Shown piece by piece: positions 9,901 to 59,565 of a DNA stretch of 64,000 nucleotides. The translations under genes were made by a program, and so were the position numbers. Position 1 is the first letter of the stretch. Every line of letters starts with the position of its first letter. Origin of the DNA: Macrostomum lignano (Eukaryota); contig NIVC01001735.1 in NCBI GenBank assembly GCA_002269645.1, positions 1 to 64,000 on the forward strand, in the 5' to 3' direction. Below the pieces are notes generated by a model that was not told the origin of the DNA, made no database searches, and was given only the letters and a program-made list of their open reading frames with translations.

Positions 9901-12900
9901 TTGTCCTCAGTGTTTGACTGGAGCTGGTGATTGTCCTCAGTGTGTGACTGGAGCTGGTGATTGTCCTCAGTGTGTGACTGGAGCTGGTGATTGTCCTCAG
10001 TGTGTTACTGGAGCTGGTGATTGTCCTCAGTGTTTGACTGGAGCTGGTGATTGTCCTCAGTGTGTGACTGGAGCTGGTGATTGTCCTCAGTGTGTGACTG
10101 GAGCTGGTGATTGTCCTCAGTGTGTGACTGGAGCTGGTGATAGTCCTCAGTGTGTGACTGGGGCTGGTGATAGTCCTCAGTGTGTGACTGGAGCTGGTGA
10201 TAGTCCTCAGTGTGTGACTGGGGCTGGTGATAGTCCTCAGTGTGTGACTGGAGCTGGTGAGCGGGTCTATGAAATTTGCTAGCAGGAAATCTGCTAGACG
10301 AAATCTGCTAGCCGAAATCCGCTAGCCGAAATCTGCTAGACGAAATCTGCTAGCCGAAATCCGCTAGCCGAAATCTGCTAGCAGGAATTTTGCTAACCAA
10401 AACCGGCGAGCAGCAATTTACGAAGTTGCAATTTGCTAGAGACAATTCTTCTTGTCCGATTTCGCAAGAAACTTTGCAGGACGTATTAATGCCGGACAAA
10501 TAAATTTGCGTTTAATTGCTCTAATTACTTTACTTTAGAGTTTTTACTATGTACAGTGTACCGTAATCGATGGAAAATATCTACATGTATACATTTACGA
10601 TACATACAGCTATAGTAAATTGTACTTTGGACATACATGTATCTAGCTATAGATACTGTACACCAACTGTGTGTTACTGTATGCTAAAGTACTTGGAAAT
10701 CGACAAAATCATTTAAAAATTTTTTCTTACCTCATATTTTATAGAAGCATAAAATACATTTAAAGAATACACATGTAATTGCTGTTTTTGATGCTGACTT
10801 TCCAGCTGTGTTCCCAGCAAAGTTTATCTAGTTGAATTAGCTGTGCATGATTACATGCAATATGCAAATTAAATTTTTATGTAATATTTTTACGCATTCA
10901 GTGATATGTGATTCGTGGTAACAGTGAAAACTGTGCTTTCGTAGATAATCTTTTTTAGACATTGATAATGTTTTAGCGCTAAAAGCAGGTAGTTCACGTA
11001 GTTAAATTTAAACATATCTACGAACAACTTTCAGTCTAAATAGCTTGCAGTGGCAGTATAAGTTATATATTTACTCGTACAAATCAAAGGCTAGCAGATT
11101 TCGGCTAGCAGATTTCGGCAAGCGAATTCCGGCTAGCAAATTTCGTCTAGCAGATTTCGTCTAGCAGATTTCGTCTAGCAGATTTCGTCTAGCAGATTTC
11201 GTCTAGCAGATTTCGTCTAGCAGATTTCGTCTAGCAGATTTCGTCTAGCAGATTTCGTCTAGCAGATTTCGTCTAGCAGATTTCGTCTAGCAGATTTCGT
11301 CTAGCAGATTTCGTCTAGCAGATTTCGGCTAGCAAACTTCGGCTAGCAGATTTCGTCTAGCAGATTTCGTCTAGCAGATTTCGTCTAGCAGATTTCGTCT
11401 AGCAGATTTCGTCTAGCAGATTTCGGCTAGCAGATTTCGGCTAGCAAACTTCGGCTAGCAGATTTCCTGCTAGCAGATCTCGTACTCCCCTGGTGAGCCT
11501 GTCCTGAGTAAAGGTGAGGCACTCACAAATGAAGTGAGGGACGGGAACCTGCAGCGCGGGACTTCCGGCAGTGGGGGTCGGTTAGAATAACCCAGATCGT
11601 TTTTTGGGTTGGTTATAGATCGGTACAAATGACTACATGTAAGTGAATTTGTACAGCAAAAGCTTCCCGCCCTACTCCCGCAGAATTCATAAACCCATTG
11701 AATGTCTCGGCTTCAAAAAAATCCAAGAGAACATCGCGGACGCAAAGATTGCTGCAAATGGGCGAAAGCTGAGCATTCTTATTACCAGTACAGGAAACAG
11801 CCACCCCCTGCTATGTGAGTGGCTCTTCCTTCTGTCTCGATCTCAGCTGGTGTCCCAACTACCTGATCCAGCCTTGCACCTGTCCCTCTCCGCTATCAGC
11901 TGGTGTCCTAACTACCTGATCCAGCCTTGCACCTGTCCCTCTTCGCTATCAGCTGGTGTCCCAACTACCTGACCCAGCCTCGCACCTGTCCCTCTCCGCT
12001 ATCAGCTGGTGTCCCAACTACTTGACCCAGCCTCGCACCTGTCCATTTTCGCTATCAGCTGATGTCCCAACTACCTGACCCAGCCTCGCACCTGTCCCTC
12101 TCCGCTATCAGCTGGTGTCCCAACTACTTGACTCAGCCTCGCACCTGTCCCTCTCCGCCATCAGACGGTCCAAGCTACCTGACACTCCGGCCGTACACCA
12201 ACCGGATGTACCAGATGTGCAGCAAGTGGCGCCTGGTGATCTCATTGCGCCACGCAGAGGAACAAATGCGACAGCGGGGCACCAGCTTCCTCACTGGATC
12301 CGGTGCCGTCTTCAGCCACGAGGAGTTCACGCCGTTTACAGTTTGCATGGCAAATCCGAATCTGGAGTCTGTGCTAGGTAATCAAGGCTCGCAGGACTCG
12401 GCACTTTATTTCTGTTTAGCGCGGCCCTACTTTTGAGGAAAAAGTATTAAGATCATAGAACAATTATTGTAATATTGTTCAGAAAAGAAAGAATACTTCA
12501 CAGCTCTCAATATTTGCTACCATTCTTCTGCATGAGTGCTCTCAACACTCGTTATTTACATTTCAGCCGTTCATCCAGGCAGATATCTGGCTAAACCAGT
12601 CGGGTAAGAGCCCTGTCGTTATTCACGTTCCCAGCGAACTAAACATTTTGTCACAAAAAACTCTGCTAAGCATGCTTCTGACTTGAGTAGTTGGCAATTT
12701 TTTCCATGATGCTTTTGCAAACTGGCTGAGGGCAAGTAAAAAATCCTCAACGGGAGCTGGGGCACTTTAGTGGATTAGTTACGCTCGTATTTGGCTTTAG
12801 TGCAGCGTTTGGGTGCAGTAGACACGCACTTATCGGCAGCACTGCCCGCCTCTAAGCACCAAGCCTGAATCTGATAAAGCATCCAAGTCACGAGAGTTTG

Positions 12901-27609: not shown

Positions 27610-29690
27610 TGGGTGTGGGATCTGAGTCTAAAGCAGTGTGGGATCTGAGTGTAATACAGTGTGGGATCTGAGTGTAATATAGTGTGGGATCTGAGTGTAA
27701 TATAGTGTGGGATCTGAGTGTAATACAGTGTGGGATCTGAGTGTAATATAGTGTGGGATCTGAGTGTAATACAGTGTGGGATCTGAGTGAAATATAGTGT
27801 GGGATCTGAGTGTAATATAGTGTGGGATCTGAGTGAAATATAGTGTGGGATCTGAGTGTAATACAGTGTGGGATCTGAGTGAAATACAGTGTGGGATCTG
27901 AGTGTAATACAGTGTGGGATCTGAGTGAAATACAGTGTGGGATCTGAGTGTAATACAGTGTGGGATCTGAGTGTAATACAGTGTGGGATCTGAGTGTAAT
28001 ACAGTGTGGGATCTGAGTGTAATATAGTGTGGGATCTGAGTGTAATATAGTGTGGGATCTGAGTGTAATACAGTGTGGGATCTGAGTGTAATATAGTGTG
28101 GGATCTGAGTGTAATACAGTGTGGGATCTGAGTGAAATACAGTGTGGGATCTGAGTGTAATACAGTGTGGGATCTGAGTGAAATACAGTGTGGGATCTGA
28201 GTGTAATACAGTGTGGGATCTGAGTGTAATACAGTGTGGGATCTGAGTGTAATACAGTGTGGGATCTGAGTGTAATACAGTGTGGGATCTGAGTGTAATA
28301 CAGTGTGGGATCTGAGTGAAATACAGTGGGATCTGAGTGAATACAGTGTGGGATCTGAGTGAAATACAGTGTGGGATCTGAGTATAATACAGTGTGGGAT
28401 CTGAGTATAATACAGTGTGGGATCTGAGTGAAATACAGTGTGGGATCTGAGTGAAATACAGTGTGGGATCTGAGTGTAATACAGTGTGGGATCTGAGTGA
28501 AATACAGTGTGGGATCTGAGTGTAATACAGTGTGGGATCTGAGTGAAATACAGTGTGGGATCTGAGTGTAATACAGTGTGGGATCTGAGTGTAATACAGT
28601 GTGGGATCTGAGTGTAATACAGTGTGGGATCTGAGTGTAATATAGTGTGGGATCTGAGTGTAATATAGTGTGGGATCTGAGTGTAATACAGTGTGGGATC
28701 TGAGTGTAATATAGTGTGGGATCTGAGTGTAATACAGTGTGGGATCTGAGTGAAATACAGTGTGGGATCTGAGTGTAATACAGTGTGGGATCTGAGTGAA
28801 ATACAGTGTGGGATCTGAGTGTAATACAGTGTGGGATCTGAGTGTAATACAGTGTGGGATCTGAGTGTAATACAGTGTGGGATCTGAGTGTAATACAGTG
28901 TGGGATCTGAGTGTAATACAGTGTGGGATCTGAGTGAAATACAGTGGGATCTGAGTGAATACAGTGTGGGATCTGAGTGAAATACAGTGTGGGATCTGAG
29001 TATAATACAGTGTGGGATCTGAGTATAATACAGTGTGGGATCTGAGTGAAATACAGTGTGGGATCTGAGTGAAATACAGTGTGGGATCTGAGTGAAATAC
29101 AGTGTGGGATCTGAGTATAATACAGTGTGGGATCTGAGTGAAATACAGTGTGGGATCTGAGTGAAATACAGTGTGGGATCTGAGTGAAATATAGTGTGGG
29201 ATCTGAGTGTAATACAGTGTGGGATCTGAGTGAAATACAGTGTGGGATCTGAGTGAAATACAGTGTGGGATCTGAGTGTAATACAGTGTGGGATCTGAGT
29301 GTAATACAGTGTGGGATCTGAGTGTAATACAGTGTGGGATCTGAGTGTAATATAGTGTGGGATCTGAGTGTAATATAGTGTGGGATCTGAGTGTAATATA
29401 GTGTGGGATCTGAGTGTAATATAGTGTGGGATCTGAGTGTAATACAGTGTGGGATCTGAGTGAAATACAGTGTGGGATCTGAGTATAATACAGTGTGGGA
29501 TCTGAGTGAAATACAGTGTGGGATCTGAGTATAATACAGTGTGGGATCTGAGTGAAATACAGTGTGGGATCTGAGTGTAATACAGTGTGGGATCTGAGTG
29601 AAATACAGTGTGGGATCTGAGTGTAATACAGTGTGGGATCTGAGTGTAATACAGTGTGGGATCTGAGTGAAATACAGTGTGGGATATACA
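27610..29690. repeat. 23-bp minisatellite (GTGTGGGATCTGAGTGTAATACA)n, ~90 copies, between GTF2F2 and PCM1
   Basis: Direct reading; source of the spurious ~700-aa ORFs. Confidence 0.95.
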
Positions 29691-29794
29691 ATTCGCAAGT
29701 AGAATGTACACAACGATGCACAATACAACCAGCTACCCATCAAACAAACCTGCAGCTCATCTCTGAGCTAATTCGCGAAAACAACATCAAAATC

Positions 29795-30417
29795 ATGCTG
29801 CGCTCGGAAACCAAGCGTCGGGAGGCGGCGGTCAACGGCTCCGCCAATTCCGACGTAGACGGCTACGCGTCCGATATTAAAAGCCTGTCGGCCCGGCTGC
29901 AGCAGATCCGGCACTACCTGCGGCAGGCCGCTCAGCTTCGCCGATCTGTCGGCGGCCGGCAGGGCCGCAATCTGGACAGTCTGATGCAGCAGTTGGCCGC
30001 GCAGGAACGGCACTGCTCCGCGGCGCTCGAAGACCGACTCCGACGCCATGCTGGCATTGACATGGCGGCGGATCAACAGTCCGACGGCGAGAGGGACAGC
30101 GAGGACGTCGGAGATCAGGACGACGCTGATGAAGATGGAGACGCAGACGAGGATGTCGAAGTGGAGAGCAAGGGCCGACCGACCATCGAGTCGAAGCTTG
30201 GCCGGCACCCGGACACGGCTGACACTTCCCAGTGCGGCGAAGATGACAGCGAACGGGGCGTTGATGTTGACAGTGGCGAGGAGCTGGAGGCTCTGCGGAA
30301 TCAGCGCGACCTGCTGCGGCGGATGTTGCAGGTAGTTTGTCTGTCTGTCCGTCTCTGTCCGTCTGTGTCTGTCTGTCTGTCCGTCTGTGTCTGTCTGTCT
30401 GTCTGTCTGTCTGTCTG

Positions 30418-30450
<33 letters not shown>

Positions 30451-30475
30451 AGTGTCTGTCTGTCTGTCTGTCTGC

Positions 30476-30508
<33 letters not shown>

Positions 30509-30510
30509 AG

Positions 30511-30541
<31 letters not shown>

Positions 30542-30562
30542 GTCTGTCTGTCTGTCTGTCAG

Positions 30563-30598
<36 letters not shown>

Positions 30599-30600
30599 AG

Positions 30601-30648
<48 letters not shown>

Positions 30649-31495
30649 AGTGTCTGTCTGTCTGTCTGTCTGTCTTAGTGTCTACTTGTCTGTTTATCTG
30701 TCTGTGTCTGTCTGTCTGATGCCCAAACGTCACCCTCCTTTCATCCGTAGCCCGCAGGCAGTCAGCAGCCGCAGCAGCATCGCCAGCTGCCAGCACTTCC
30801 AGCAAGCAATCAGCAAGTCGCCAGTGCCGGCGCACCATCTGAAGACGCCCTGGTCAAGCGCCTAATGGATCTGGAATCGCGCCGAGCCCGCCTAGACCAG
30901 ACCCTAGAGGAGCTGGCCGACTTGCGTGCCGACGCGTCCACAACCAGCACGGAGGTGCAGGCGGCGGCCGGTTCGTTCAGCGCCAGACAGACGGCGGGCG
31001 AAGCCGCCCAGCTGCTGGGAGCCATGGAGACGATGCAGGCCCGCCTGGACCGCCTCCGCTCCGTCCGCGATCGTTTGGAAAGCGTTCGCCAACTGGCTGA
31101 CGACTATCGACGATCGGGGACCTCGCTGTCGACTAACCAGTCTGGCGGCGGCGGCGGCCAGAATGGCGATGACGATGGTGATGGAGGCAACGCGGAAGCT
31201 TCGGCTGCCGAGCGGGAGCTGCGCCAGCTGGTGCTGGAGCGACAGCGCCTGGTGGATCTGCAAACCCAGCTGGAGCTGCTGCACTCTGCCGCTGGTCGAG
31301 ACGCTGCGGCGGCGGCGGCCGCTCTTGCCGCTGCCGAACAAGAAGACAACGACGAGGAGGCCGCGGGCCAGCAAGAGGAAGAAGAAGAGGAACAGGCCGA
31401 TGCTGACGATGACGAAGACGATGAAGACGGCGATGATGACGCTTACAACGATGGCGACTCGGCGACGTTCCCGGCTGGCCTGGAGGCGCGAGAGC

Positions 31496-31535
<40 letters not shown>

Positions 31536-33954
31536 ATCTCAGATTTCAGCGGAGCAGTTGGGATCGGCCGAGTTCGGCGCCGGAGCGGCCCAGATTGCCG
31601 TGTGCCTGCAGCAGTGCTGCGCCTTGCTGTCCGCCCAGCAGCAGCAGCTGCACCGCCTCACGCAGCAGGTGAACGACCTGCAGCAGAGACAGCAGCAACA
31701 GCAGCCGGCTGCATTGTATCAGAGCTATCCCGGATATTGGTGGGGATTCTGGGGCCAGCATCATCCTTATCAGCAGCAGCAGCAGCAGCAGGTGCCGTGC
31801 TGCTCATGCGCTGACACGGCAGCTCAGAGACAGGCGGCCATGTCTACAACTCGAGCCACCATCGGCTCCCAGACTGACCTGGCTCAGCAGTCTGCATTCT
31901 CAGCCGCCGAGTCCGAGACGGACAACTCCGAAGCCCATAGCCAGCAGGGATTCGATCGGCTACGCAGCAGCATCTACTCCGAGGTGGCCGCCGTGATCTC
32001 TCAGAACGAGTCGCGGCCGCACTACCTGATTGAGCTGTTCCGCGAACTGCAGCTGCTGTCTACTGACAGGCTTCGACAGCGGGCTCTGCAGCAGCTGCAG
32101 CGATTGGTGAACGGCTATCTGGCTTCCCGGCCGCCTTGGCTGCGAGATAGCGACGATGGCGACGGCGAGGGCGACTACGATAGAGGCGCCGTAGCTGTAG
32201 TTGTCGACGTCGAACAAACTCCATCGGAAAGCTACGCAACAACGACAACATCGGCGGCCGCAGAGGAGGCGACTGCCGAAGCGCCTTTCGCTCGGGACTC
32301 TCTTGGCGACACTGCTATTAATCTGGACCGGGCGATGCGCCAGGTCCGTCAGCATCAGCAGCAGCAGCGTCAGCACCTTCTATCATCGTCATCTTCGGGC
32401 GGACGGGCCGCCGTCGCTGCCGGAGCTTCGGCCAGCGGTAGAATCGATGCCGAACAATTGGACCGCCAGGTGAAGTCCGTGGTGCGGCATCTTATACCGG
32501 CTCTGCGGGCGCGCGCCCAGGAGGTGGCCACACCGCAACTGCTGAAATGGGTGGCTGATTTGGCTCTGCAACGGGTTAAATTGATCCTGGTGAGTGCGTG
32601 TGCCAGCTGTAACCGTTTCCAGCTCTAGTGCCCCACTTGGTCATTCAGTGCCTCATTTGGTCATTCAGTGCCCCACTTGGTCATTCAGTGCCCCACTTGG
32701 TCATTCAGTGCCCCATTTTGGTCATTCAGTGCCCCACTTGGTCATTCAGTGCCCCACTTGGTCATTCAGTGCCCCACTTGGTCATTCAGTGCCCCACTTG
32801 GTCATCCAGTGCCCCACTTGGTCATCCAGTGCCCCTCTCAATCTTCCAGTGCCTCACTCAATCAACACTTTTCTTAGGATCCTTCCGCCACCGGCGACGA
32901 AGCCGGCAGCAGCGCCGCGTCCACAGCCTCGGCGGCATCGAAGGACAGCGAATTCGATCAGTTCTTTGCCCGCCAGCTGTCCAGCCTGCTGGCCGACTCT
33001 CTGGCCAGATTTCGCGGTCATCGTTTGGCCGACTGCACCGAGGACATGCTGGTGGATCTGAGCGAACTGCTGTTCAACGAATTGGCCTTCTTTAGATTAG
33101 TCAACAATCTGGACATTAGTAACGATGATGTACCGGCCGCTGCCGGCGGCGATACGGACAGCGTAGCCACCGAAGATGTCGCTGCCAACAAAGCTGAAAA
33201 TGAAGACGCCGGTCAAGATGAAGAAGAGCCAGACAATGGAGAAGAAACCGAAGGCGGAGATGAAGAAGAATCGGAAGCTGAAACGGCGTCGGCGAAGGCT
33301 GTGGAAGATTACGCCGACGACTTTGAGGAGGCTGCGACTAGTAGCGACGCGGAGGCGGCGGGCGCTGCTGTTCAGAACCACGAGAAGGAGGTGAGAGTGG
33401 AAGTGCTGAACTATTCTGGTAATGTTACAAGTGGATAGCGGCAACCCATTGGTAAAAGACTGGAGGGTAGCGGCAACCCATTGATAAAGACCGGAGGGTA
33501 GCGACAACCCATTGATAAAGACCGGAGGGTAGCGACAACCCATTGATAAAGACCGGAGGGTAGCGGCAACCCATTGATAAAGACCGGAGGGTAGCGACAA
33601 CCCATTGATAAAGACCGGAGGGTAGCGACAACCCATTGATAAAGACCGGAGGGTAGCGGCAACCCATTGATAAAGACCGGAGGGTAGCGGCAACCCATTG
33701 ATAAAAGACTAGATGGTAGTGGCAACCCATTAATAAAAGAGTGGCAACCCATTGATAAAAATGCAGACCAGTCTTATATAATACTTTAGTACAAACAAAA
33801 TCATTAAACGCTACTACAAGTATTGACATTCGCGTGTTAACAACTTGCATGCGAGGTTTCGCCTAATTCCGCACAAGCCGATGTGAATTCGCGCGAGCAG
33901 CAGTCGAACGGCGAAATTGTCGCCGATGAAGAAGTGAAGGCAGATGACAGCTAA
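29795..33954 (+). CDS. PCM1: Pericentriolar material 1-like centriolar satellite scaffold, 4 exons, ~995 aa
   Basis: Exons 29795-30331, 30751-32589, 32878-33390, ~33856-33954 (2988 nt). PCM1 hallmarks: [74 protein letters not shown]...[25 protein letters not shown]-terminal RLQQIRHYL. Last acceptor uncertain. Confidence 0.88.
30335..30717. repeat. (CTGT)n microsatellite filling PCM1 intron 1
   Basis: Direct reading. Confidence 0.95.
32626..32860. repeat. 20-bp minisatellite (CCCCACTTGGTCATTCAGTG)n in PCM1 intron 2
   Basis: Direct reading. Confidence 0.92.
33435..33760. repeat. 31-bp minisatellite (GATAAAGACCGGAGGGTAGCGGCAACCCATT)n in PCM1 intron 3
   Basis: Direct reading. Confidence 0.92.
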
Positions 33955-35469: not shown

Positions 35470-35745
35470 AATTTAGGCCATAGACACTTTATGTCATAGA
35501 CTGTTTAGGTCAAATACTGTTTGGGTTAGGTCATAGACAGTTTAGTTTGTTTAAGCCATAGACAGTTTAGGCTATATACAGTTTAGATCATAGACAGTTT
35601 AGCCCATAGACACTTTATGTCATAGACTGTTTAGGTCAAATACTGTTTAGGTTAGGTCATAGACAGTTTACACCATAGACAGTTTAGGCCATAGACAGTT
35701 TAGGTCATAGACAGCTTAGTTCATAGACAGTTTGGGGCATAGGAA
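35470..35745. repeat. Degenerate ~16-bp array (GTCATAGACAGTTTAG)n upstream of the BRCT-AMZ gene
   Basis: Direct reading; same core as the array at 37700-38480. Confidence 0.85.
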
Positions 35746-35892
35746 TTAAATAGGCATTTGTGCGACAGCACAATCTATACAGCTAAGCACTGTCAGTAAT
35801 TTTTTCATATTTATCGCGTCAATTTTTGATGAAAAGCCGCCGCTCCGCAGCTGGCGCCAGTCGTCGCCACCGTCAAGCGGAGCCATGGGGCC

Positions 35893-38800
35893 ATGCCGGC
35901 CAAACGCAGAGGCCAAACGGCCACCACCCACGTATTCTCCGGCATGAGCTTCGCTTTATCGAAGCACGAACCGCGCCGCGCCCGCCTTGCCGACTGTATT
36001 CGCCGACATGGCGGAGCTGTGGTCGCTGTCAACAATTTTAGCCGTCGTTGCCAGTCCGACCCGCCTAATATAGACTTTTTTGTGCAGAGCTACAATTGCG
36101 AATTCGATGACAAATTCAACGAGGCAATTGGCGCGCGCTCGGACAACACGGTGCCGGCCGACTATGTGCTGCAGTGCGCCGCTAGAGGCCGCCTGCTCGA
36201 TGTCCGACTTCACGCGCTTGGGTGGCTGGGCGAAGACGGAGATGACCGGTGAGAGAAGGAGAGAGTGGCAGAGAGACTGGGGGAGGGTAGCAGCCCCCTG
36301 GCCCTGAGAGACTGGGGGGGGTCTGGGGAGTAGCAGCCACCCTGAGAGACTGGCGGAGGGTGGGGGGAGTAGCAGCCACCCTGAGATACTGGCGGAGGGT
36401 GGGGGGAGTAGCAGCCACCCTGAGAGACTGGCGGAGGGTGGGGGGAGTAGCAGCCACCCTGAGAGACTGGCGGAGGGTGGGGGGAGTAGCAGCCACCCTG
36501 AGATACTGGCGGAGGGTGGGGGGAGTAGCAGCCACCCTGAGAGACTGGCGGAGGGTGGGGGAGTAGCAGCTACCCTGAGAGACTGGCGGAGGGTGGGGGG
36601 AGTAGCAGCCCCTGAGAGACTGGCGGAGGGTGGTGGGAGTAGCAGCCCCCTGAGATACTGGCGGAGGGTGGGGGGAGTAGCAGCTCCCTGAGATACTGGG
36701 GGAGGGTGGTGGGAGTAGCAGCCCCCTGAGATACTGGGGGGGAGGGTGGTGGGAGTAGCAGCCCCCTGAGATACTGGGGGGAGGGTGGTGGTAGTAGCAG
36801 CCCCCTGAGATACTGGGGGGAGGGTGGTGGGAGTAGCAGCTCCCTGAGATACTGGCGGAGGGTGGGGGAGTAGCAGCTCCCTGAGATACTGGGGGAGGGT
36901 GGTGGGAGTAGCAGCCCCCTGAGATACTGGGGGGGAGGGTGGTGGGAGTAGCAGCCCCCTGAGATACTGGGGGGAGGGTGGTGGGAGTAGCAGCCCCCTG
37001 AGATACTGGGGGGAGGGTGGTGGGAGTAGCAGCCCCCTGAGATACTGGGGGAGGCTGGTGGGAGTAGCAGCCCCCTGAGATACTGGGGGGAGGGTGGTGG
37101 GAGTAGCAGCCACCCTGAGAGACTGGCGGAGGGTGGTGGGAGTAGCAGCCCCCTGAGATACTGGGGGGGAGGGTGGTGGGAGTAGCAGCCCCCTGAGATA
37201 CGAGACTGGGGGGAGGTTGGGTAGAGTAGCAGCTCTAATCTGCCTAATCTCCACCCGCATCGGGCAGCAGTGAAGACTCGGCCCTAGCGGCCTGTCTGGC
37301 CTCTCTCCTACCGGCCTGGCCCCGGCCGCTTCCCAACCTGCTGGAGTCGCAGTGCCAGCCGCAGTGCTACGCCGAGTTTCTCGACTTTCCCGACCGATTT
37401 CAACGAGGAGAATCGCCCTCGGTGCTGCGACTGATTCGCATCCGACAACTGGGGGAGAGCGGGCAGGTGGCCGCGAACAGCGATTTGGTTGAATTCCTTC
37501 GCGCCTCCACTGGCTGTAGCGTTGTTTTTGGCTCTGGCTCCGGCAGCAGCGGCCGCGATTGCCTCCTGACTTGGCGGCCGGCTGGAAAGTCTTTGGCCCG
37601 GCTTCGCGTAGGGCAGTACGACTACGATATTGGACTGCGCAGGCGGGGCGGTCGAGCCTATCTGGAGGTCAGATGCTCTGATTTGTACCGTTGGAAGTTT
37701 GGGTTGGGTCATGGACAGTTTGGGTCATGGCAGTCATGACAACCTGAGTCATATAGTTTGGGTCATAGACAGTTTGATTGAATCATAGACAGTTTGGGTC
37801 ATAGACAGTTTAAATCATAGACAGTTGGGTCATGAACAGTTTGGATCATAGGCAGTTTGGTTCATAGGCAGTTTGGTTCATAGACAGTGTGGGTCATAGA
37901 CAGTTTGGGTCATAGACAGTTTGGGTCATAGACAACTTGGGTCATAGACAGTTTGGATCATAGGCAGTTTGGTTCATAGACAGTGTGGGTCATAGACAGT
38001 TTGGGTCATAGACAGTTTGGGTCATAGACAACTTCGGTCATAGACAGTTTGGGTCATAGACAGTTTGGGTCATAGACAACTTGGGTCATATACAGTTTGG
38101 GTCATAGACAGTTTGGGTCATAGACAGTTTGGGTCATAGACAGTTTGGGTCATAGACAACTTGGGTCATATACAGTTTAGGTCATAGACAGTTTGGGTCA
38201 TAGACAGTTTAAATCATAGACAGTTGGGTCATGAACAGTTTGGGTCATAGACAGTTTGGGTCATAGACAGTTTGGGTCATAGACAGTTTGGGTCATAGAC
38301 AGTTTGGGTCATAGACAGTTTAAATCATAGACAGTTGGGTCATGAACAGTTTGGGTCATAGACAGTTTGGGTCATGAACAGTTTGGGTCATAGACAGTTT
38401 GGGTCATAGACAGTTTGGGTCATAGACAGTTTAAATCATAGACAGTTGGGTCATGAACAGTTTGGGTCATAGACAGTTCGCTACGCGACAGTTTCGGTCG
38501 TGGAAAGTTCGCTACGCGTTGATGAATTCTATGTAATTCATTGAAAACATATTTTTCCTATCTTCTATCACCAATTCAACAAGCCATCTAGATGCCAGTC
38601 TAAATTATGGGGCATAGTAGATCGAGTCACAGCCTGAGTATGTGTACTTCGAATTTGTGCAAAATTGCAGCTATATGTAGATCAAAGAGTCCTTGCCCAA
38701 AGACACATCAGTAGCTTTTTAATAATAAAAAGTCATAGACATTCCTACTCTACTGTTAGTAAAAATGTAAGCAATTAGCTAATAAAATTATAGTAAGCAT

Positions 38801-39466
38801 TTTTATATATTAAACTAGCTACTGAAAGTAAAAATAAGAGTTTTTTAAGTTGCAAAATAACGAGTAAAACACGCACACACACAAGTCCTATGATTCGCCC
38901 CTCGCTCGCGTACACAGGCCATGGACCTCATAGCGGCTCTGTCAGACGCTGTGCACAATCCGTCTACTGAATCCGTCACCGTGGCTCTGCTTTCTAACGG
39001 CCTGTTCGAGCGTGGAATCTCCGAGCCAATCTACGGCCGCGGCACCGGGGACCGCTGCTGCGTAGTTTCAACCGCATCAGCAGCCTCCTTGGACTCGGCC
39101 GTGGACCCGATGATGTCCCGGCACCACCTGTTGGGCACATCGCTGCACGAACTGCTGCACTGCTTCGGTCTGGATCATTGTCCCTACGCCAGCTGCGTGT
39201 TGAATGCCTACAGCGACGACAGCGGCTTGCTCGACGAAGCCTCTCTGCCTGCCCTGCTGATCTGCCCGGTAGATCTGCGGAAGCTGTGCTCAATAGTCAG
39301 TCCGGATTCTGCTAATACTGTCCTGTTGTCCGGCCGCCGGCTGCCTGAGTATTTCGATAGGTTAGCGGCTCTGCTCAGCCGCCTGCGGCTGGGTGCCAAT
39401 GTCAGCCTGGCTGAGGCTATGCGAGATCGAGCTGTAGCTGCTTTAGAAGCAATTGGAGAGCCATAG
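35893..39466 (+). CDS. BRCT-domain + archaemetzincin (peptidase M54-like) zinc metalloprotease fusion, 3 exons, ~433 aa
   Basis: Exons 35893-36248, 37271-37667, 38918-39466 (1302 nt; phases 2 and 0 match). Exon 1 is BRCT-like (FSGMSFAL...RLADCIRRHGGAVV...VPADYVLQCAARGRLL). Exon 2 resembles the AMZ N-terminus (PQCYAEFL...IRIRQLG...LVEFL). Exon 3 has HELLHCFGLDHCPYASCVLN and LLICPVDLRKL. Confidence 0.8.
36275..37225. repeat. G-rich ~38-bp minisatellite in BRCT-AMZ intron 1
   Basis: (GAGACTGGCGGAGGGTGGGGGGAGTAGCAGCCACCCTG)n. Confidence 0.92.
37700..38480. repeat. 16-bp minisatellite (GGGTCATAGACAGTTT)n in BRCT-AMZ intron 2
   Basis: Direct reading. Confidence 0.92.
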
Positions 39467-39859: not shown

Positions 39860-41700
39860 AATTTGACTGACTGACTAACTGACTCCCTCATTGACTGACT
39901 CCCTCATTGACTCACTGACTCACTCATTGACTGACTCCCTCATTGACTCACTGACTCACTCATTGACTGACTCCCTCATTGACTGACTCCCTCATTGACT
40001 GACTCCCTCATTGACTGACTCCCTCATTGACTGACTCCCTCATTGACTGACTCCCTCATTGACTGACTCCCACATTGACTGACTCCCTCATTGACTGACT
40101 CCCTCATTGACTCACTGACTCACTCATTGACTGACTCCCTCATTGACTGACTCCCTCATTGACTGACTCCCTCATTGACTGACTCCCTCATTGACTCACT
40201 GACTCACTCATTGACTCACTGACTCACTCATTGACTCACTGACTCACTCATTGACTCACTGACTCACTCATTGACTCACTGACTCCCTCATTGACTCACT
40301 GACTCACTCATTGACTCACTGACTCACTCATTGACTGACTCCCTCATTGACTGACTCCCTCATTGACTGACTCCCTTATTGACTGACTCCCTCATTGACT
40401 GACTCCCTCATTGACTCACTGACTCCCTCATTGACTGACTCCCTCATTGACTGACTCCCTCATTGACTCCCTCATTGACTGACTGACTCCCTCATTGACT
40501 CACTGACTCACTCATTGACTGACTCCCTCATTGACTAACTCCCTCATTGACTGACTCCCTCATTGACTGACTCCCTCATTGACTGACTCCCTCATTGACT
40601 GACTCCCTCATTGACTGACTCCCTCATTGACTCACTGACTCACTCATTGACTGACTCCCTCATTGACTGACTCCCTCATTGACTGACTCCCTCATTGACT
40701 CCCTCATTGACTGACTGACTCCCTCATTGACTCACTGACTCACTCATTGACTGACTCCCTCATTGACTGGCTCCCTCATTGACTGACTCCCTCATTGACT
40801 CCCTCATTGACTGACTCCCTCATTGACTGGCTCCCTCATTGACTCCCTCATTGACTGACTCCCTCATTGACTGGCTCCCTCATTGACTGACTCCCTCATT
40901 GACTCCCTCATTGACTGACTGACTGACTCACTCACTCATTGACTGACTAACTGACTCACTCGTTGACTCACAGACTCACTCATTGAATCACTCATTGACT
41001 GACTCACTTACTCACTGACTCACTGACTGACTCACTTACTCACTGACTCACTGACTGACTCACTGACTGACTTGAGTGAGTGGGTGACTGACTCACTGAC
41101 TGACTTGAGTGAGTGGGTGACTGACTCACTGACTGACTCACAGACTCACTGACTCACTGACTGACTGAGTCACCGACTGACTCACTGACTGACTCGCTGA
41201 CTGACTTAAGTGAGTGGGTGACTGACTCACTGACTGACTTAAGTGAGTGGGTGACTGACTCACTGACTGATTCAATGACTCACGGACTGACTGACTCACT
41301 GACTCACTGACTCACTGACTCACTGACTGACTCACTGACTGACTTGAGTGAGGGGGTGACTGACTGACTCACAGACTCACTTACTCACTGACTCACTGAC
41401 TGACTGAGTCACCGACTGACTCACTGACTGAGTCACCGACTGACTCACTGACTGACTCACTGACTGACTTAAGTGAGTGGGTGACTGACTCAATGACTCA
41501 CGGACTGACTGACTCACTGACTCACTGTCTCACGGACTGACTGACTCACTGACTGACTCACTGACTCACTGACTGACTCACTGACTGACTGACTCACCGA
41601 CTGACTCACTGACTGACTCACTGACTCACGGACAGACTGACTCACTGACTGACTTGAGTGAGGGGTGACTGACTGACTCACTGACTCATGGACTGTGTCT
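39860..41700. repeat. Compound array: 16-bp (CTGACTCCCTCATTGA)n grading into (GACTGACTCACT)n
   Basis: Direct reading; lies between BRCT-AMZ and SMAD4. Confidence 0.92.
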
Positions 41701-41862: not shown

Positions 41863-44800
41863 ATGCTGTCCCTAAACATGAACAGCAGCAATCCGCCTGC
41901 GGTCTGCAATCCGCCCGCGGCGGCGCCGTCTCCCGCCTATTCGGCCGCCAGCAGCAGCGCCGCCATGGCAATGCAGCACCCGCCTCAGTCGCCCGCCTCA
42001 GTTGGCGCCGCCTCCTCCGTCACGTCCTCCGACGCTTGCCTGTCAATTGTGCACTCGCTGATGTGCCACAGGCAGGGCGGCGAGTCCGAGGGGTTCAGCA
42101 AGAAGGCTATCGAGTCGCTGGTCAAGAAGCTGAAAGATAAGCGCGACGAATTGGACGCGCTGATTCAAGCTGTGACCAGCAACGGTAATCAGCCTACAAA
42201 GTGCGTCACCATACCCAGGACTCTTGACGGCCGGCTGCAGGTAATAACTGGCGCTTTGATTTTGATTGATACCGTGTAATCCCACCGTTTGTCACCCTGT
42301 GCTCCCACCGTTTGTCACCCTGTGATCCCACCGTTTGTCACCCTGTGATTCCACCGTTTGTCACCCTGTGATTCCACTGTTTGTCACCCTGTGATTCCAC
42401 TGTTTGTCACCCTGTGATCCCACCGTTTGTCACCCTGTGATTCCACTGTTTGTCACCCTGTGATTCCACTGTTTGTCACCCTGTGATCCCACCGTTTGTC
42501 ACCCTGTGATTCCACTGTTTGTCACCCTGTGATTCCACTGTTTGTCACCCTGTGATTCCACTGTTTGTCATCTTGTAATCCCACAGTTTGTCACTCTGGG
42601 ATCCCACCGATTGTCACCCTGGGATCCCACTGTTTGTCATCTTGTAATCCCACAGTTTGTCACTCTGGGATCCCACCGATTGTCACCCTGGGATCCCACT
42701 GTTTGTCATCTTGTAATCCCACTATTGCCACTCTCTGATCCCACTATTATCACCCTCTGATCCCATATTACCACTCTCTGATCCAACTATTATCAGCCTG
42801 TGATCCCACTATCATCACCCTCTGATCCCACTATTATTACCCTCTGATCCAACTATTATCAGCCTGTGATCCCCAAACACTCCAGGTGGCCGGTCGTAAA
42901 GGCTTTCCCCACGTGGTGTACGCGAAGATCTGGCGCTGGCCGGACCTGCACAAGAACGAGCTCAAGCACACCCGCCAGTGCCAGTACGCGTTCGAGCTCA
43001 AGCAGGACGCCGTCTGCGTCAATCCGTATCATTACGAGCGCGTGGTCAGCCCCGGCTTGGAGTTCTCCACTCTCAGCCTTGGCGATGATGACGACGCCAC
43101 CTCTCAGCCTGATTATGCTTCCCCTATGCTGCACCAGCAGCAGCACCTTCAGCACCAGCCTCAGTCTCAGCTGCATCCGCACCAGCTGCATCCTGGCCAG
43201 CATCAGCAGCAGCAACAGCAGCCGCCGCCGCAGCATCATCTGCATCATCACAACCAGCAGCAGCAGCAGCAGCAACAGCATCACGGAAGCTGGGGAGCTC
43301 AAGCCATGCCGCCGCCTCCGCCCATTCATCATCAGCAGCTGCAGCATCACCAGCTGCCGCCATTGTCAGTGGCCACTCCCTGGGTTGATCGCAGCGTCTC
43401 TTGTCAGCAGCCGCTAACCAGGCAGCCTCACCCGGTGCACTGGTGCACCATCACCTACTATGAGCAAGCCGAGCAGGTTGGCGAAATGTTCAAGGTGCCC
43501 TACCAGCAATCCAAGGTGATCATTGACGGCTACACTGACCCTTCGTCCAGTCATCGCTTCTGCCTCGGCCAGTTGAGCAACGTTCACCGCAGCGAGGTCT
43601 CCGAGCGAGCCAGGCTGCACATCGGCAAAGGCGTCAAGCTGACTATGCGAGACGAGGGCAACGTGTGGCTGGAAGTGCTCTCCGACCACTCCGTCTTTGT
43701 TGGCACCTTCTATCTGGACCGGGAGGCTGGCCGCCCGCCCGGCGATGTTGTGCACAAAATCTATCCGGGAACTCATATTAAGGTGAATCTGGGTGAAAAT
43801 CTAGATGTGAGGATCAGATCAAGGTGACCCTCTGTAGATATGAGGATCAGATCAAGGTGACCCTCTGTAGATATGAGGATCAGATCAAGGTGACCATCTG
43901 TAGATGCGAGGATCAGATCAAGGTGACCCTCTGTAGATATGAGGATCAGATCAAGGTGACCATCTGTAGATGCGAGGATCAGATCAAGGTGACTAGAGTC
44001 TGTAGATGTGAGGATCAGATCAAGGTGACTAGAGTCTGTAGATGTGAGGATCGGATCAAGGTGACTCCAGTCTGTAGATGTGAGGATCGGATCAAGGTAG
44101 GAGTCAGTAGATGTGATGATCAGATCAAGGTGACCATCTGTAGATGTGATGATCAGATCAAGGGGACCATCTGTAGATGTGAGGATCAGATCAAGGTGAC
44201 CATCTGTAGATGTGATGATCAGATCAAGGGGACCATCTGTAGATGTGATGATCAGATCAAGGTGACCATCTGTAGATGTGAGGATTAGATCAAGGTGACT
44301 AGAGTCTGTAGATGTGAGGATCGGATCAAGGTAGTAGTCAGTAGATGTGAGGCTATATACTAGTAGTATTTCAAGTACAGAAATGCCCATGTAGAATGAG
44401 CATCACTCATCTCTTTCTTCGAAATGACAATTTGTGTCTTAATAATTAAATATTTACTCTAAAAATCTATCGTTTATTTTTAAGAATCGGTTATTTACTT
44501 CTAAGAATATTTTGTTCATTTCTATAAATCGGTTATTTATTTCTAGAATCCTTTATTCATTTCTAGGAATCGGTTTTTTTAAGAATCGGTTTTTTTCTAC
44601 GAATCTTTTATTCATTTCTAATAACCGGTTTTTTATTTCTAAGAATCATTTATTCATTTCTAAGAATCGGTTCTTTTTTCTACGAAACTTTCATTTATTT
44701 CTAAGAATCGGTTTTTTATTTATAATAATATTTTATTCGTTACTAAGAAACAGTTATTCTCTCTCCCCCTCTCTCTTGTGAAGGTGTTTGACATCCTGCA

Positions 44801-45284
44801 GTGCCACCGGGACATGCGGGCCCAGGCCATCCAGGCGCAGCACACAGCCACAGCCACGGCTGCCGTTGTGGCCGGCGGCCCGGCCCCGGCCGCCGCCATC
44901 CCGTCGGCGAATCCCATCGCCCTGCAGGCCGGCGCCGGCATCGGCGTCGACGAACTGCGCCGCCTGTGCGTCCTGCGGATGAGCTTCGTGAAAGGCTGGG
45001 GGCCGGACTATCCGCGCAAGACCATCAAGGAGACGCCCTGCTGGGTTGAGGTTCAGCTGCACCGGCCGCTGCAGCTGCTTGACGAAGTGTTGCAGAGTCT
45101 GCCATTGAATGATTTGAAGCCTACGCGACACTTTCTGCAGCAGGGCGGCAGCGGCGGCGCCTCCGCCAGCCCGAAGCTTCCCAGCCAGCAACCGCCGCCC
45201 CCGCAGCAGCAGCCACAGCAGCAGCAGCAGGTGCCACCCGCTGCGGCACCGCCTCTATCGCAGCAGTCTGGCATTCATCACTAA
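41863..45284 (+). CDS. SMAD4: SMAD4/Medea co-Smad, 3 exons, ~591 aa
   Basis: Exons 41863-42240, 42886-43782, 44784-45284 (1776 nt). MH1: [61 protein letters not shown]2 with the SMAD4-specific insert and [27 protein letters not shown]. No C-terminal SSxS. Confidence 0.96.
42280..42870. repeat. 23-bp minisatellite (GTGATTCCACTGTTTGTCACCCT)n in SMAD4 intron 1
   Basis: Direct reading. Confidence 0.92.
43800..44355. repeat. 33/36-bp minisatellite (GATCAGATCAAGGTGACCATCTGTAGATGTGAG)n in SMAD4 intron 2
   Basis: Direct reading; a second degenerate AAGAATCGGTTTT array follows at ~44460-44750. Confidence 0.92.
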
Positions 45285-57668: not shown

Positions 57669-57809
57669 CAGGGTGGAGGAGAGCCAGTTGGACCGCCGTT
57701 TGAACTCCTGCCAGTTCGTCGTTAAATCAGGTGGGAAACTTTTCTGGGATTTTTCCTAACAAGCCACCTAATAGAAAGATTGGTAGCTTTAAAAATGAGG
57801 GGGTAGGCA

Positions 57810-58990
57810 GATTCAAGGACTGAGGGGGGTGGCAGATTCAAAGACTGAGGGGACAGAGGCAGATTCAAGGACTGAGGGGACAGAGGCAGATTCAAGGACT
57901 GAGGGGACAGAGGCAGATTCAAGGACTGAGGGGACAGAGGCAGATTCAAGGACTGAGGGGACAGAGGCAGATTCAAGGACTGAGGGGACAGGCAGATTCA
58001 AGGACTGAGGGGACAGAGGCAGATTCAAGGACTGAGGGGACAGAGGCAGATTCAAGGACTGAGGGGGGAGGCAGATTCAAGGACTGAGGCGACAGAGGCA
58101 GATTCAAGGACTGAGGGGACAGAGGCAGATTCAAGGACTGAGGGGGCGAGAGGCAGATTCAAGGACTGAGGGGGGAGGCAGATTCAAGGACTGAGGGGGG
58201 AGGCAGATTCAAGGACTGAGGGGGGAGGCAGATTCAAGGACTGAGGCGACAGAGGCAGATTCAAGGACTGAGGGGACAGAGGCAGATTCAAGGACTGAGG
58301 GGACAGAGGCAGATTCAAGGACTGAGGGGGCGAGAGGCAGATTCAAGGACTGAGGGGGGAGGCAGATTCAAGGACTGAGGGGGCGAGAGGCAGATTCAAG
58401 GACTGAGGGGGGAGGCAGATTCAAGGACTGAGGGGGGGAGGCAGATTCAAGGACTGATGGGACAGAGGCAGATTCAAGGACTGAGGGGGCGAGAGGCAGA
58501 TTCAAGGGACTGAGGGGGCGAGAGGCAGATTCAAGAACGGAGGGGGCGAGAGGCAGATTCAAGAACGGAGGGGGCGAGAGGCAGATTCAAGAACGGAGGG
58601 GGGCGAGAGGCAGATTCAAGGACGGAGGGGGGCGAGAGGCAGATTCAAGGACGGAGGGGGGCGAGAGGCAGATTCAAGGACGGAGGGGGCGAGAGGCAGA
58701 TTCAAGGACGGAGGGGGGCGAGAGGCAGATTCAAGGACGGAGGGGGGCGAGAGGCAGATTCAAGGACGGAGGGGGGCGAGAGGCAGATTCAAGGACTGAG
58801 GGGGCGAGAGGCAGATTCAAGAACGGAGGGGGGCGAGAGGCAGATTCAAGGACGGAGGGGGGCGAGAGGCAGATCCAAGGACTGAGGGGGGCGAGAGGCA
58901 GATTCAAGGACGGAGGGGGGCGGGAGGCAGATTCAAGGACGGAGGGGGGCGAGAGGCAGATTCAAGGACTGACAGCGGGTGGAGAGGCAG
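57810..58990. repeat. 27-28-bp minisatellite (GAGGCAGATTCAAGGACTGAGGGGACA)n between NDUFS7 and HAUS2-like
   Basis: Direct reading; variant units grade along the array. Confidence 0.93.
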
Positions 58991-59565
58991 ATTGAACCTC
59001 TGAGAGAGAGCTGAGAGACCGAGAGACAGAGAGCTGAGATGCTGATATTCTGAGCTCAAAATGAGTGCAAATAATTCACGGTGATGTTAAAAGGAACCAA
59101 CAAGTTTTTCATAAATAAATGACTACTTGAATAGCAGTTCAAGCTACTTCAAGTAGAATTGAAGCTAGGATTGATGAGTGAAGCTAAACCCACTTCAAGA
59201 CTGCATTTTATTTATCGTTAGCATAGATCTGTGCCGGCTATACAGACAAGCTAAAATCCCAATGCATGCAGGATCTACACTGGATAAGGTGGAACAAAAA
59301 GGATCGAAAAAACACAGAGTTCCCAAAGTCAAAGCAAGATAGAAAAAATCCAGGACTGTTTCTCTAACTATGAATGACGCCATTAAAGTCATATTTTTAT
59401 TATGAACAAAACCCTGACATCCCGTAACGAAATTAGTAGACAACAAAGAAAAACACTTTCGTATGATAATAACATTAGACTGCTTCCCTACAAACTCTAT
59501 ATCTACATTGATGAAGGATAACTGAAATTTGTCTGTTTATTAAAACTGTCACACAGTTGCGTCTC

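Follow-up and report, generated by a model that had tools for sequence, protein, structure and literature searches.

A BRCT domain joined to an archaemetzincin-type metalloprotease domain in the flatworm Macrostomum lignano and in several protists

Does a single gene of the flatworm Macrostomum lignano join a BRCT domain to an archaemetzincin-type zinc metalloprotease, and what might such a protein do? The question is raised by the gene BOX15_Mlig026686g2, which lies on the forward strand at 35893-39466 of scaffold NIVC01001735.1 (assembly Mlig_3_7). We analyzed bases 1-64000 of this scaffold (the window), in which coordinates are identical to those of the scaffold. An earlier interpretation, made from the letters of the window only (the sequence-only reading), had proposed that three exons join in frame through GT-AG sites to encode ~433 amino acids, with an N-terminal BRCT-like domain followed by a complete archaemetzincin-like domain. 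We are nearly certain that the locus is one cis-spliced gene encoding one polypeptide with a BRCT and an archaemetzincin domain, a judgment that covers the gene model and the domain composition.

We reproduced the coordinates, splice sites and reading frame of the three-exon model. Exon 1 (35893..36248) extends from an ATG at 35893 and encodes amino acids 1-118 and the first two nucleotides of codon 119. Its translation consists of the entire BRCT domain, preceded by a short basic tail (MPAKRRG) at the N-terminus. The exon-1 donor (CG/GTGAGA) fits the M. lignano consensus GT[G/A]AG (PMC8629364), and reading through it would end at a TGA at 36250-36252. Intron 1 (36249..37267; GTGAGA...CAG) is nearly all a 39-bp minisatellite (36302-37201, 23 copies). 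Exon 2 (37268..37667, with an alternative start at 37271) encodes 133 residues comprising a linker helix, an E..PQ..EF motif (37344-37385) and the N-terminal beta-sheet half of the protease, and it contains no methionine and no in-frame ATG. Residues E145 and Q151 of the linker motif are invariant in the family alignment described below. Intron 2 (37668..38917) has the sites GAG/GTCAGA and CAG/GCC, and it holds 45 copies of a 16-bp satellite (37755-38478) that is related to an array upstream of the gene (35472-35742). Exon 3 (38918..39466) encodes a backing helix, the remaining strands, the active-site helix, a cysteine-rich segment and C-terminal helices, and ends with the stop codon TAG at 39464-39466.

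The length of the protein depends on the acceptor of exon 2, which is a NAGNAG site (CAG/CAG, 37265-37270). With the downstream acceptor, the joined coding sequence is 1302 nt and encodes 433 amino acids. Use of the upstream CAG lengthens it to 1305 nt and 434 amino acids, including one extra serine. The public model of the locus uses the upstream CAG (...GDDR-S-EDS...) and hence has 434 residues, whereas the model of a paralogue, Mlig026686g4 on scaffold NIVC01000677.1, uses the downstream CAG (...GDDR-EDS...). This difference in usage suggests a one-codon alternative splice.

The start codon is less firmly placed. The start used here is the ATG at 35893, which gives the full BRCT domain. The reading frame is also open upstream (35833..35892, forward strand), within a GenBank coding sequence that is annotated as 5' partial, and a candidate spliced-leader acceptor is present at CAG 35848-35850. 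A leader AUG joined there would be in frame, 15 codons upstream of the ATG, would add MLAPVVATVKRSHGA, and may be an alternative start. There is also an out-of-frame ATG at 35885, in a strong context (GCCATGG), that opens a 20-codon open reading frame overlapping the main ATG at 35893.

At 100% identity, the translated model matches GenBank PAA64602.1 (the '5' partial' entry) and UniProt A0A1I8HLM7 (434 amino acids), which are deposited under the names 'hypothetical protein' and 'BRCT domain-containing protein'. The M. lignano annotation was built from genome-guided RNA-seq assemblies (StringTie/TACO and a de novo transcriptome) rather than by ab initio prediction, and these assemblies were split wherever experiments had mapped a spliced-leader or poly(A) site (PMC5730564). 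Because the deposited model is derived from RNA-seq and still joins the exons, the junction between the BRCT and archaemetzincin parts has transcript support. Two paralogous models also join the BRCT and archaemetzincin exons, via either NAG of the acceptor. We searched literature full texts and supplements for Mlig026686, and no paper mentions the gene or gives expression data for it.

The organism uses trans-splicing in ~30% of its genes, and ~7% of its assembled transcripts are polycistronic precursors (PMC5730564; PMC8629364). These properties, together with the TGA directly after the exon-1 donor, are what would be expected if the locus made two separate products, a BRCT-only transcript retaining intron 1 and a trans-spliced archaemetzincin mRNA, with the fusion an artefact of annotation. 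However, the M. lignano spliced leader ends in ...TTGCATG (PMC8629364), and joining it to the two exon-2 acceptors gives ATG-TGA or ATG-CAG-TGA. The sequence-only reading had predicted that a leader AUG would meet TGA within two codons at either acceptor, and this is what we found. Exon 2 offers no in-frame methionine as a substitute; the next one after it is amino acid 254, and a start there would delete half of the protease fold. In addition, the deposited coding sequence still joins the exons after cutting at mapped spliced-leader sites, as do the two paralogous models. Finally, about 20 homologous clusters in other organisms and in environmental sequences are collinear fusions, some of them in single open reading frames. 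A single BLASTP alignment to a protein of Acrasis kona runs from amino acid 8 to 375, across both junctions, with a pairwise E value of 2e-35, and P0008, the closest non-flatworm relative, has the BRCT and archaemetzincin domains in one uninterrupted open reading frame. We therefore regard two separate products as very improbable, and the proposal that exon 2 is cis-spliced to the BRCT exon is borne out by the RNA-seq-derived annotation and the collinear homologues. An additional BRCT-only isoform that retains intron 1 may exist beside the fusion.

Exon 1 encodes a genuine BRCT domain. The domain core (35932..36204, amino acids 14-104) contains the pattern FVQSY-x-[DE]-rich-(K/R)(L/F), a GG turn (HGGAV) and an aromatic-x3-Cys element (YVLQC), of which HGGAV and YVLQC are conserved in the family. 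The Pfam family BRCT_2 (PF16589) matched the whole protein with 28.1 bits and exon 1 by itself with 32.1 bits, relative to a cut-off of 27.3. Predicted secondary structure fits the beta-alpha-beta-beta-alpha-beta-alpha BRCT fold, and Foldseek matches of the flatworm and Acrasis models to solved BRCT domains had a probability of 1.0 and a target-normalised TM score of ~0.7. A profile built from the BRCT domains of the family matched PDB entries for TopBP1 (3e-8), Schizosaccharomyces pombe Mdb1 (3.5e-8), yeast RAP1 (2l42; 2.6e-7) and PARP4 (2e-6), and further matches were to Dpb11, Rad4, Crb2, LigA, REV1 and human TERF2IP (1.3e-3).

These comparisons do not single out Rap1. The sequence-only reading had likened exon 1 to the single BRCT domain of Rap1/TERF2IP, and that likeness was lost among its peers. 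TopBP1 and Mdb1 scored better than RAP1, and the domain is genuine but not specifically Rap1-like because TopBP1, Mdb1, RAP1, Dpb11, PARP4 and REV1 are near-equal matches. We rejected a Rap1-specific BRCT on these grounds. The flatworm protein and Rap1 do share a single N-terminal BRCT domain, and yeast RAP1 is the third-best PDB sequence match of the family profile. Rap1 has one or more Myb domains and a Rap1 C-terminal (RCT) domain, whereas in the flatworm protein Pfam finds only BRCT and metallopeptidase families. The flatworm protein is not a Rap1 relative.

The C-terminal part of the protein is a divergent M54-type metzincin domain with intact catalytic residues, for which peptidase activity is predicted. 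Archaemetzincins have the fingerprint HExxHxxGxxH-C-x4-C-x-M-x(16-17)-C-x-x-C, in which the four cysteines form a structural zinc finger (PMC3427221). The corresponding flatworm sequence is HELLHCFGLDH-C-PYAS-C-V-L-x20-C-P-V-D. The catalytic zinc motif HELLHCFGLDH (39146-39178; amino acids 329-339 of the 434-residue form) is an intact HExxHxxGxxH, as had been claimed. It is followed by C340-x4-C345-V-L347, which completes the catalytic and Met-turn region (39146..39202), and then by CPVD (39263..39274), the second half of the zinc finger, with C368 and an aspartate in place of the fourth cysteine. In family alignments, the residues H, E, H, D, H, C, C and C and the GR of a second conserved block, LLGRATGD, are invariant; the block has diverged to IYGRGTGD in the flatworm. 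In sequence comparisons, phmmer matched the archaemetzincin 2x7m in PDB at 4.9e-4, and the family profile matched AfAmzA (3zvs) at 3.8e-8.

The term 'complete' in the sequence-only reading held for the fold and the catalytic motif and failed for three other features. First, the methionine of the Met-turn is replaced by L347 in all M. lignano copies. This methionine is kept in ~137 of the ~140 related sequences that we compared, and the three without it are the flatworm copies. Second, the Cys4 zinc finger is incomplete, with C340, C345 and C368 kept and aspartate at the fourth position. CxxD is the commonest state among eukaryotic relatives in the same comparison, and it is therefore a trait of the subfamily rather than a flatworm lesion. 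The spacer from the Met-turn to CPVD is 20 residues, four longer than the 16 residues of most relatives. Third, Pfam Peptidase_M54 (PF07998) scored 16.5 bits, below its gathering threshold of 24.4. Of the two profile comparisons proposed earlier, BRCT_2 was thus above threshold and Peptidase_M54 below it; the homologues P0009, P0010 and P0019 reach 24.5-25.9 bits on PF07998. By strict archaemetzincin membership, then, the flatworm domain has the catalytic motif and the fold and lacks the fourth cysteine, the Met-turn methionine and a Pfam score above threshold.

Structure predictions agreed with the two-domain assignment. The flatworm model, made with AlphaFold2 (AF2) on the family alignment, had a mean predicted local distance difference test score (pLDDT) of 76.6 and a predicted TM score (pTM) of 0.82. 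For the Acrasis homologue, the values were 86.5 and 0.88, and the linker was confidently predicted. Archaemetzincin and then BRCT folds headed the Foldseek results for both models. The top four or five PDB matches were AmzA structures (2x7m, 3zvs, 4axq and 3lmc), with E values of 6e-6 to 1e-3 and target-normalised TM scores of 0.55-0.75. For the flatworm model, these were followed by the BRCT folds of XRCC1, PARP4, RAP1 (rank 8), REV1 and TopBP1-6. For the Acrasis model, PARP4 was the best BRCT match, ADAMTS/ADAM metzincins appeared lower in the list, and Rap1 was not among the top 50 fold matches. The high pTM of these two-domain chains suggests that the BRCT domain packs on the protease and is not free-floating.

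The same architecture occurs well beyond the flatworm. The distribution given here rests on one exhaustive HMMER search, run against 1.84 billion cluster representatives, and on look-ups of the accessions and names of members. The search gave 131 matches below 1e-3. The best non-self matches had E values of 6e-24 to ~1e-10 and 28-35% identity, were mostly 370-470 amino acids long, and spanned the protein from the BRCT domain through the protease. We confirmed the combination of BRCT and archaemetzincin domains in about 20 clusters with Pfam and the family BRCT profile. The named members are the apusomonads Thecamonas trahens (XP_013754807) and Manchomonas bermudensis, the heterolobosean Acrasis kona (KAL0479352), the archamoeba Mastigamoeba balamuthi and the foraminiferan Bolivina argentea; the rest are environmental contigs from Logan, ENA and JGI. 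The Acrasis protein is annotated as 'archaemetzincin' and passes both the BRCT and the M54 Pfam thresholds. Members share a fixed order of elements, which the flatworm protein also follows: a BRCT domain with FVQSY..DDD.(K/R)L, the E..PQ..EF linker, the LLGRATGD block and the zinc domain, in which the C-terminal pattern is HExxHxxGxDHC...C.(M)...CPx(C/D)LRKL. Word-indexed homology searches found no family members beyond flatworm proteins or the members used as queries, but one of them did bring up the deposited M. lignano protein by which the gene was identified. A scan of prokaryote genomes recovered, in Omnitrophota, Planctomycetales and Myxococcales, only catalytic-domain relatives, none of which covers the BRCT domain.

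A rough neighbor-joining tree of the catalytic region, without branch support, grouped the BRCT-bearing sequences together, with the flatworm on a long branch beside Mastigamoeba, and placed the fungal-type archaemetzincins (one labelled Archaemetzincin-2) in a separate group. We also considered whether the N-termini of the fungal-type proteins could be degenerate BRCT domains and rejected this, as they are ~60-80 amino acids long and have a different conserved pattern. We conclude that there is an undescribed, BRCT-bearing subfamily of eukaryotic archaemetzincins whose proteins are already deposited, mostly under uninformative names, and we class the flatworm protein as a divergent member of it. 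In the literature that we searched, no paper links BRCT with archaemetzincin, metzincin or M54. The earlier statement that this architecture was not recognizable from described proteins is accordingly right for the literature and too strong for the databases, which hold ~20 protist clusters including the Acrasis protein named as an archaemetzincin. The further possibility raised then, that the architecture is common and already annotated, is true in part only, given the mostly uninformative names.

Several further observations concern individual members of the wider set. In the Logan contig that contains P0008 (L002 1544-2812, SRR26493809), the gene was called 21 codons short, and the open reading frame reaches an ATG at 1544. 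The extension brings in MTSPKKGKATPAKSGKGLFQNL, consisting of a basic tail of the SPKK type and the first BRCT strand. In a second Logan contig (L007 382-1990, SRR23287151; P0034), the gene caller separated a 113-residue BRCT fragment (382-723) from a 433-residue archaemetzincin (689-1990), and an intron or frameshift probably hides another BRCT-archaemetzincin fusion there. Because callers can split genes in this way, counts of the architecture in databases are underestimates. Relatives in bacterial metagenome-assembled genomes (L004-L006) have the eukaryote-like H..GxDHC pattern and cover query residues ~209-355.

Among the 131 HMMER matches, most of which carry no taxonomy, M. lignano is the only animal that was identified. 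This, the fact that the best named relatives are all protists, and the long flatworm branch next to Mastigamoeba in the unsupported tree would fit a gene that is not ancestral to animals and came into the Macrostomum lineage from a protist, by horizontal transfer, or is present as a contaminant. Contamination we rejected because the introns contain M. lignano-type satellites and the gene has the same neighbors on two scaffolds, between PCM1-like and SMAD genes on a 183-kb scaffold and again on a 529-kb scaffold. As for transfer, the lack of taxonomy for most matches means that restriction to one animal is not established. Transfer from a protist is in our estimate quite unlikely, although transfer and vertical descent with loss are indistinguishable with the present data. 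Such an origin would leave the mechanism proposed below unchanged; if it were true, the presence of the protein in the flatworm would say little about the biology of animal archaemetzincins.

What might the fused protein do? We give even chances to an active, BRCT-targeted and probably nuclear peptidase. The metzincin domain would be the zinc-dependent peptidase, and the BRCT domain would be a targeting or switching unit that docks the enzyme on a partner, which could be another BRCT protein, a phosphorylated protein, poly(ADP-ribose) or the end of a DNA molecule. The partner would most probably be nuclear, because BRCT proteins are overwhelmingly nuclear genome-maintenance factors and because several members of the family have tails resembling nuclear localization signals. 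Such basic tracts occur directly before the BRCT domain in at least five independent members (MPKRKRAKKK, KRARKRAR, KKKKAKATQKAK, SPKKGKATPAKSGKG and the flatworm MPAKRRG). Judged by domain type alone, a role in chromatin or DNA damage is plausible. Crystal structures of archaeal AmzA have self-occluded, inactive clefts, suggesting that activity is triggered (PMC3427221). Since the AmzA clefts are self-occluded and the BRCT domain is predicted to pack on the protease, a ligand bound to the BRCT domain may also open the active site.

Several of our observations, and some from the literature, weigh against this proposal. The leucine at the Met-turn and the sub-threshold M54 score were described above. 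The phosphate pocket of the BRCT domain (Ser-Gly...Thr-x-Lys), whose residues we take to correspond to those of BRCA1 and MDC1, is only partly present: the serine is usual and is followed by lysine, histidine or asparagine instead of glycine, and a conserved lysine or arginine aligns with the pocket lysine of Mdb1, preceded by an acidic run in place of the threonine. Some BRCT proteins are not nuclear DNA-damage factors, and three of these (Chs5, ECT2 and pescadillo) are among the matches of the family profile. The pTM score is an indirect measure of domain packing. The paralogues differ in 4 synonymous and 6 non-synonymous codons and show no sign of purifying selection. In vitro, archaeal AmzA enzymes had no activity, and CarG, the homologue in Myxococcus xanthus, is non-catalytic (PMC3427221).

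The features of the catalytic domain could mean that the archaemetzincin part has lost catalysis and become a zinc-stabilised binding module, so that the protein would serve as a BRCT adaptor or scaffold. Leucine at the Met-turn in all flatworm copies, aspartate at the fourth cysteine, the longer spacer and the M54 score all point in this direction, although replacing the methionine at the Met-turn of other metzincins reportedly destabilises the enzymes and does not abolish activity. There are also inactive relatives: AfAmzA and MkAmzA in vitro, AMZ1, which is without the third histidine, and CarG (PMC3427221). However, the known inactive homologues have lost one of the catalytic Glu/His residues, whereas the catalytic glutamate and the three histidine ligands are invariant across a BRCT-archaemetzincin family of only ~25-30% identity. 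CxxD, moreover, is the majority state in eukaryotic relatives, and AMZ-tk is an active archaemetzincin (PMC4681839). We therefore consider a pseudo-protease unlikely.

The BRCT domain might instead have nothing to do with the nucleus or with DNA damage. It could be a generic protein-protein interaction domain or an intramolecular regulator, or could target the protein to ribosome biogenesis, vaults or the cytoskeleton, in which case the protease would have its site of action in the cytoplasm, as do the reported aminopeptidases AMZ1 and AMZ2. Consistent with this, pescadillo, ECT2, Chs5 and PARP4 (the vault PARP) are found beside repair proteins among the nearest BRCT folds, the high pTM suggests a BRCT domain packed on the protease, the basic tail is absent from many family members, and the canonical phosphate pocket is incomplete. 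On the other hand, most of the top matches are genome-maintenance BRCT domains (TopBP1, Mdb1, RAP1, Dpb11, Rad4, Crb2, LigA and REV1), and basic tails lie directly before the BRCT domain in at least five independent members. A non-nuclear function has, in our assessment, a low probability, similar to that of a pseudo-protease.

A broader proposal goes further than an active, BRCT-targeted peptidase. BRCT-archaemetzincins might be an ancient, unrecognised class of nuclear genome-maintenance zinc proteases that are switched by their BRCT domains at damaged or replicating chromatin, where they could, for example, remove trapped or modified proteins; the BRCT-less AMZ1 and AMZ2 of vertebrates and fungi would be derived forms. 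We hold this only as a speculative possibility, improbable as a whole.

The protein can be compared with two groups of known systems. Canonical archaemetzincins of vertebrates and fungi (AMZ1/AMZ2; M54, PF07998) share the pattern HExxHxxGxxH-C-x4-C-x-(M), followed by C-x-x-(C/D), with the flatworm protein. They have no BRCT domain, and the N-terminus of the fungal type is a short C-x-H...TFPAPLVLPGD segment. Fungal-type proteins, many of which also have CPVD, share with the flatworm a proline-glutamine motif before the protease, which reads YPPQS..W in them and QCQPQCYAEF in the flatworm, and the flatworm differs from AMZ1/AMZ2 in the leucine at its Met-turn and its longer spacer. According to published reports, AMZ1 and AMZ2 are aminopeptidases, with a biological role that is unclear (PMC3427221, PMC4681839). 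Archaeal AmzA proteins (2x7m, 3zvs/4axq and 3lmc) are the best structural and profile matches for the C-terminal two-thirds of the flatworm protein. They are stand-alone proteins of 160-195 amino acids with a Cys4 zinc finger and a Met-turn, whereas the eukaryotic domain is ~270 amino acids long, with beta-hairpin insertions, extra C-terminal helices and the BRCT domain at its N-terminus. CarG provides a precedent for an archaemetzincin fold in DNA-linked regulation, as it acts with a transcription factor in M. xanthus (PMC3427221). CarG has glutamine for the catalytic glutamate, is inactive and has no BRCT domain, whereas the flatworm protein keeps HExxH.

The second group consists of enzymes tethered by a BRCT domain. 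In PARP1, PARP4, DNA ligases III and IV, LigA, REV1, TdT/Pol lambda and ECT2, a single BRCT domain docks a catalytic domain, as it would here, and the BRCT domains of PARP4, REV1, LigA, XRCC1 and TopBP1 are among the closest matches to the flatworm or family BRCT domain. None of the catalytic partners in these enzymes is a protease, and we know of no described BRCT-protease fusion, in the literature that we searched or otherwise. The DNA-protein-crosslink proteases SPRTN and Wss1 offer a functional analogy only: an HExxH enzyme is brought to chromatin by appended modules. Their fold is SprT-like rather than that of a metzincin, and their modules are SHP, PIP, UBZ and SIM. No homology of the flatworm protein to SPRTN or Wss1 was detected, in an analysis that did not test this link.

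The gene lies between an upstream neighbor (29771-33438, forward strand) encoding a 986-residue protein with a PCM1_C domain and a downstream neighbor (41863-45284, forward strand) encoding a 591-residue SMAD (MH1 and MH2). The order PCM1-like, BRCT-archaemetzincin and SMAD is repeated on NIVC01000677.1. Two sequence types of the flatworm protein are recorded, each under both GenBank and UniProt accessions. Unique intron and untranslated-region segments are 97-99% identical between the paralogous loci, as conserved as the exons (98-100%). We had considered an argument for purifying selection, based on exons being 98-100% and introns ~91% identical, and dropped it because unique non-coding sequence is conserved alike.

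The paralogue Mlig026686g4 (L003 ~10060-10070) has an 8-bp insertion right after the ATG equivalent to that at 35893 (ATG CCG GCG ATG TAA). Its BRCT frame has no upstream ATG, and the same N-terminus is found in UniProt A0A1I8G8J8 and A0A1I8G903. Of the 11 differences that separate the copies within exons, 7 lie in the BRCT exon. This paralogue may start differently or be decaying. Two other models are reduced. P0004 (PAA56316.1, Mlig026686g3) is frame-shifted within exon 2 and ends after 239 amino acids with an out-of-frame tail. P0003 (PAA55682.1, Mlig031006g1), on another scaffold, is a 118-residue model of the C-terminal part only, starting from MMSRHH. Either these are duplicates that became pseudogenes, or they reflect misassembly of the partly duplicated genome.

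The window is dense in minisatellites: Tandem Repeats Finder reported 31 rows at a score of at least 400, some describing the same array. The arrays have periods of 12-53 bp and up to ~150 copies (e.g., 7342-10260, 27613-29685, 39864-41686 and 57805-58993). The 16-bp family found upstream of the gene and in intron 2 has the unit GGTCATAGACAGTTT. Minisatellite arrays are the least conserved parts of the paralogous loci, at ~91% compared to 97-99% for unique sequence. An Rfam scan of the window gave no match.

The aminopeptidase activity of human AMZ1 and AMZ2 has been questioned, and the archaeal enzymes crystallise with closed, inactive clefts (PMC3427221). Archaemetzincins have been without a convincing biological function since they were first described, and their fusion to a BRCT domain offers a hint by association. 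The fusion persists across several eukaryotic supergroups and is therefore likely to be functional rather than accidental. BRCT domains are the characteristic docking element of proteins in DNA damage and replication and of PARP/ligase proteins, and the fusion here speaks for a role that is regulated and probably nuclear. If the protease is gated by its BRCT domain, it would be a new enzyme class among BRCT-tethered activities. RNA interference and irradiation-sensitive stem cells are available in M. lignano. Because transgenesis is also established there (PMC5730564), the hypothesis is directly testable in this animal. Should BRCT-archaemetzincins prove to be an ancient nuclear class, archaemetzincins would gain their first real lead to a function, which could be tested in the flatworm by transgenesis and RNA interference. 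At present, any function of this domain fusion is entirely inferred, and the protein may serve as a concrete lead into archaemetzincin biology.

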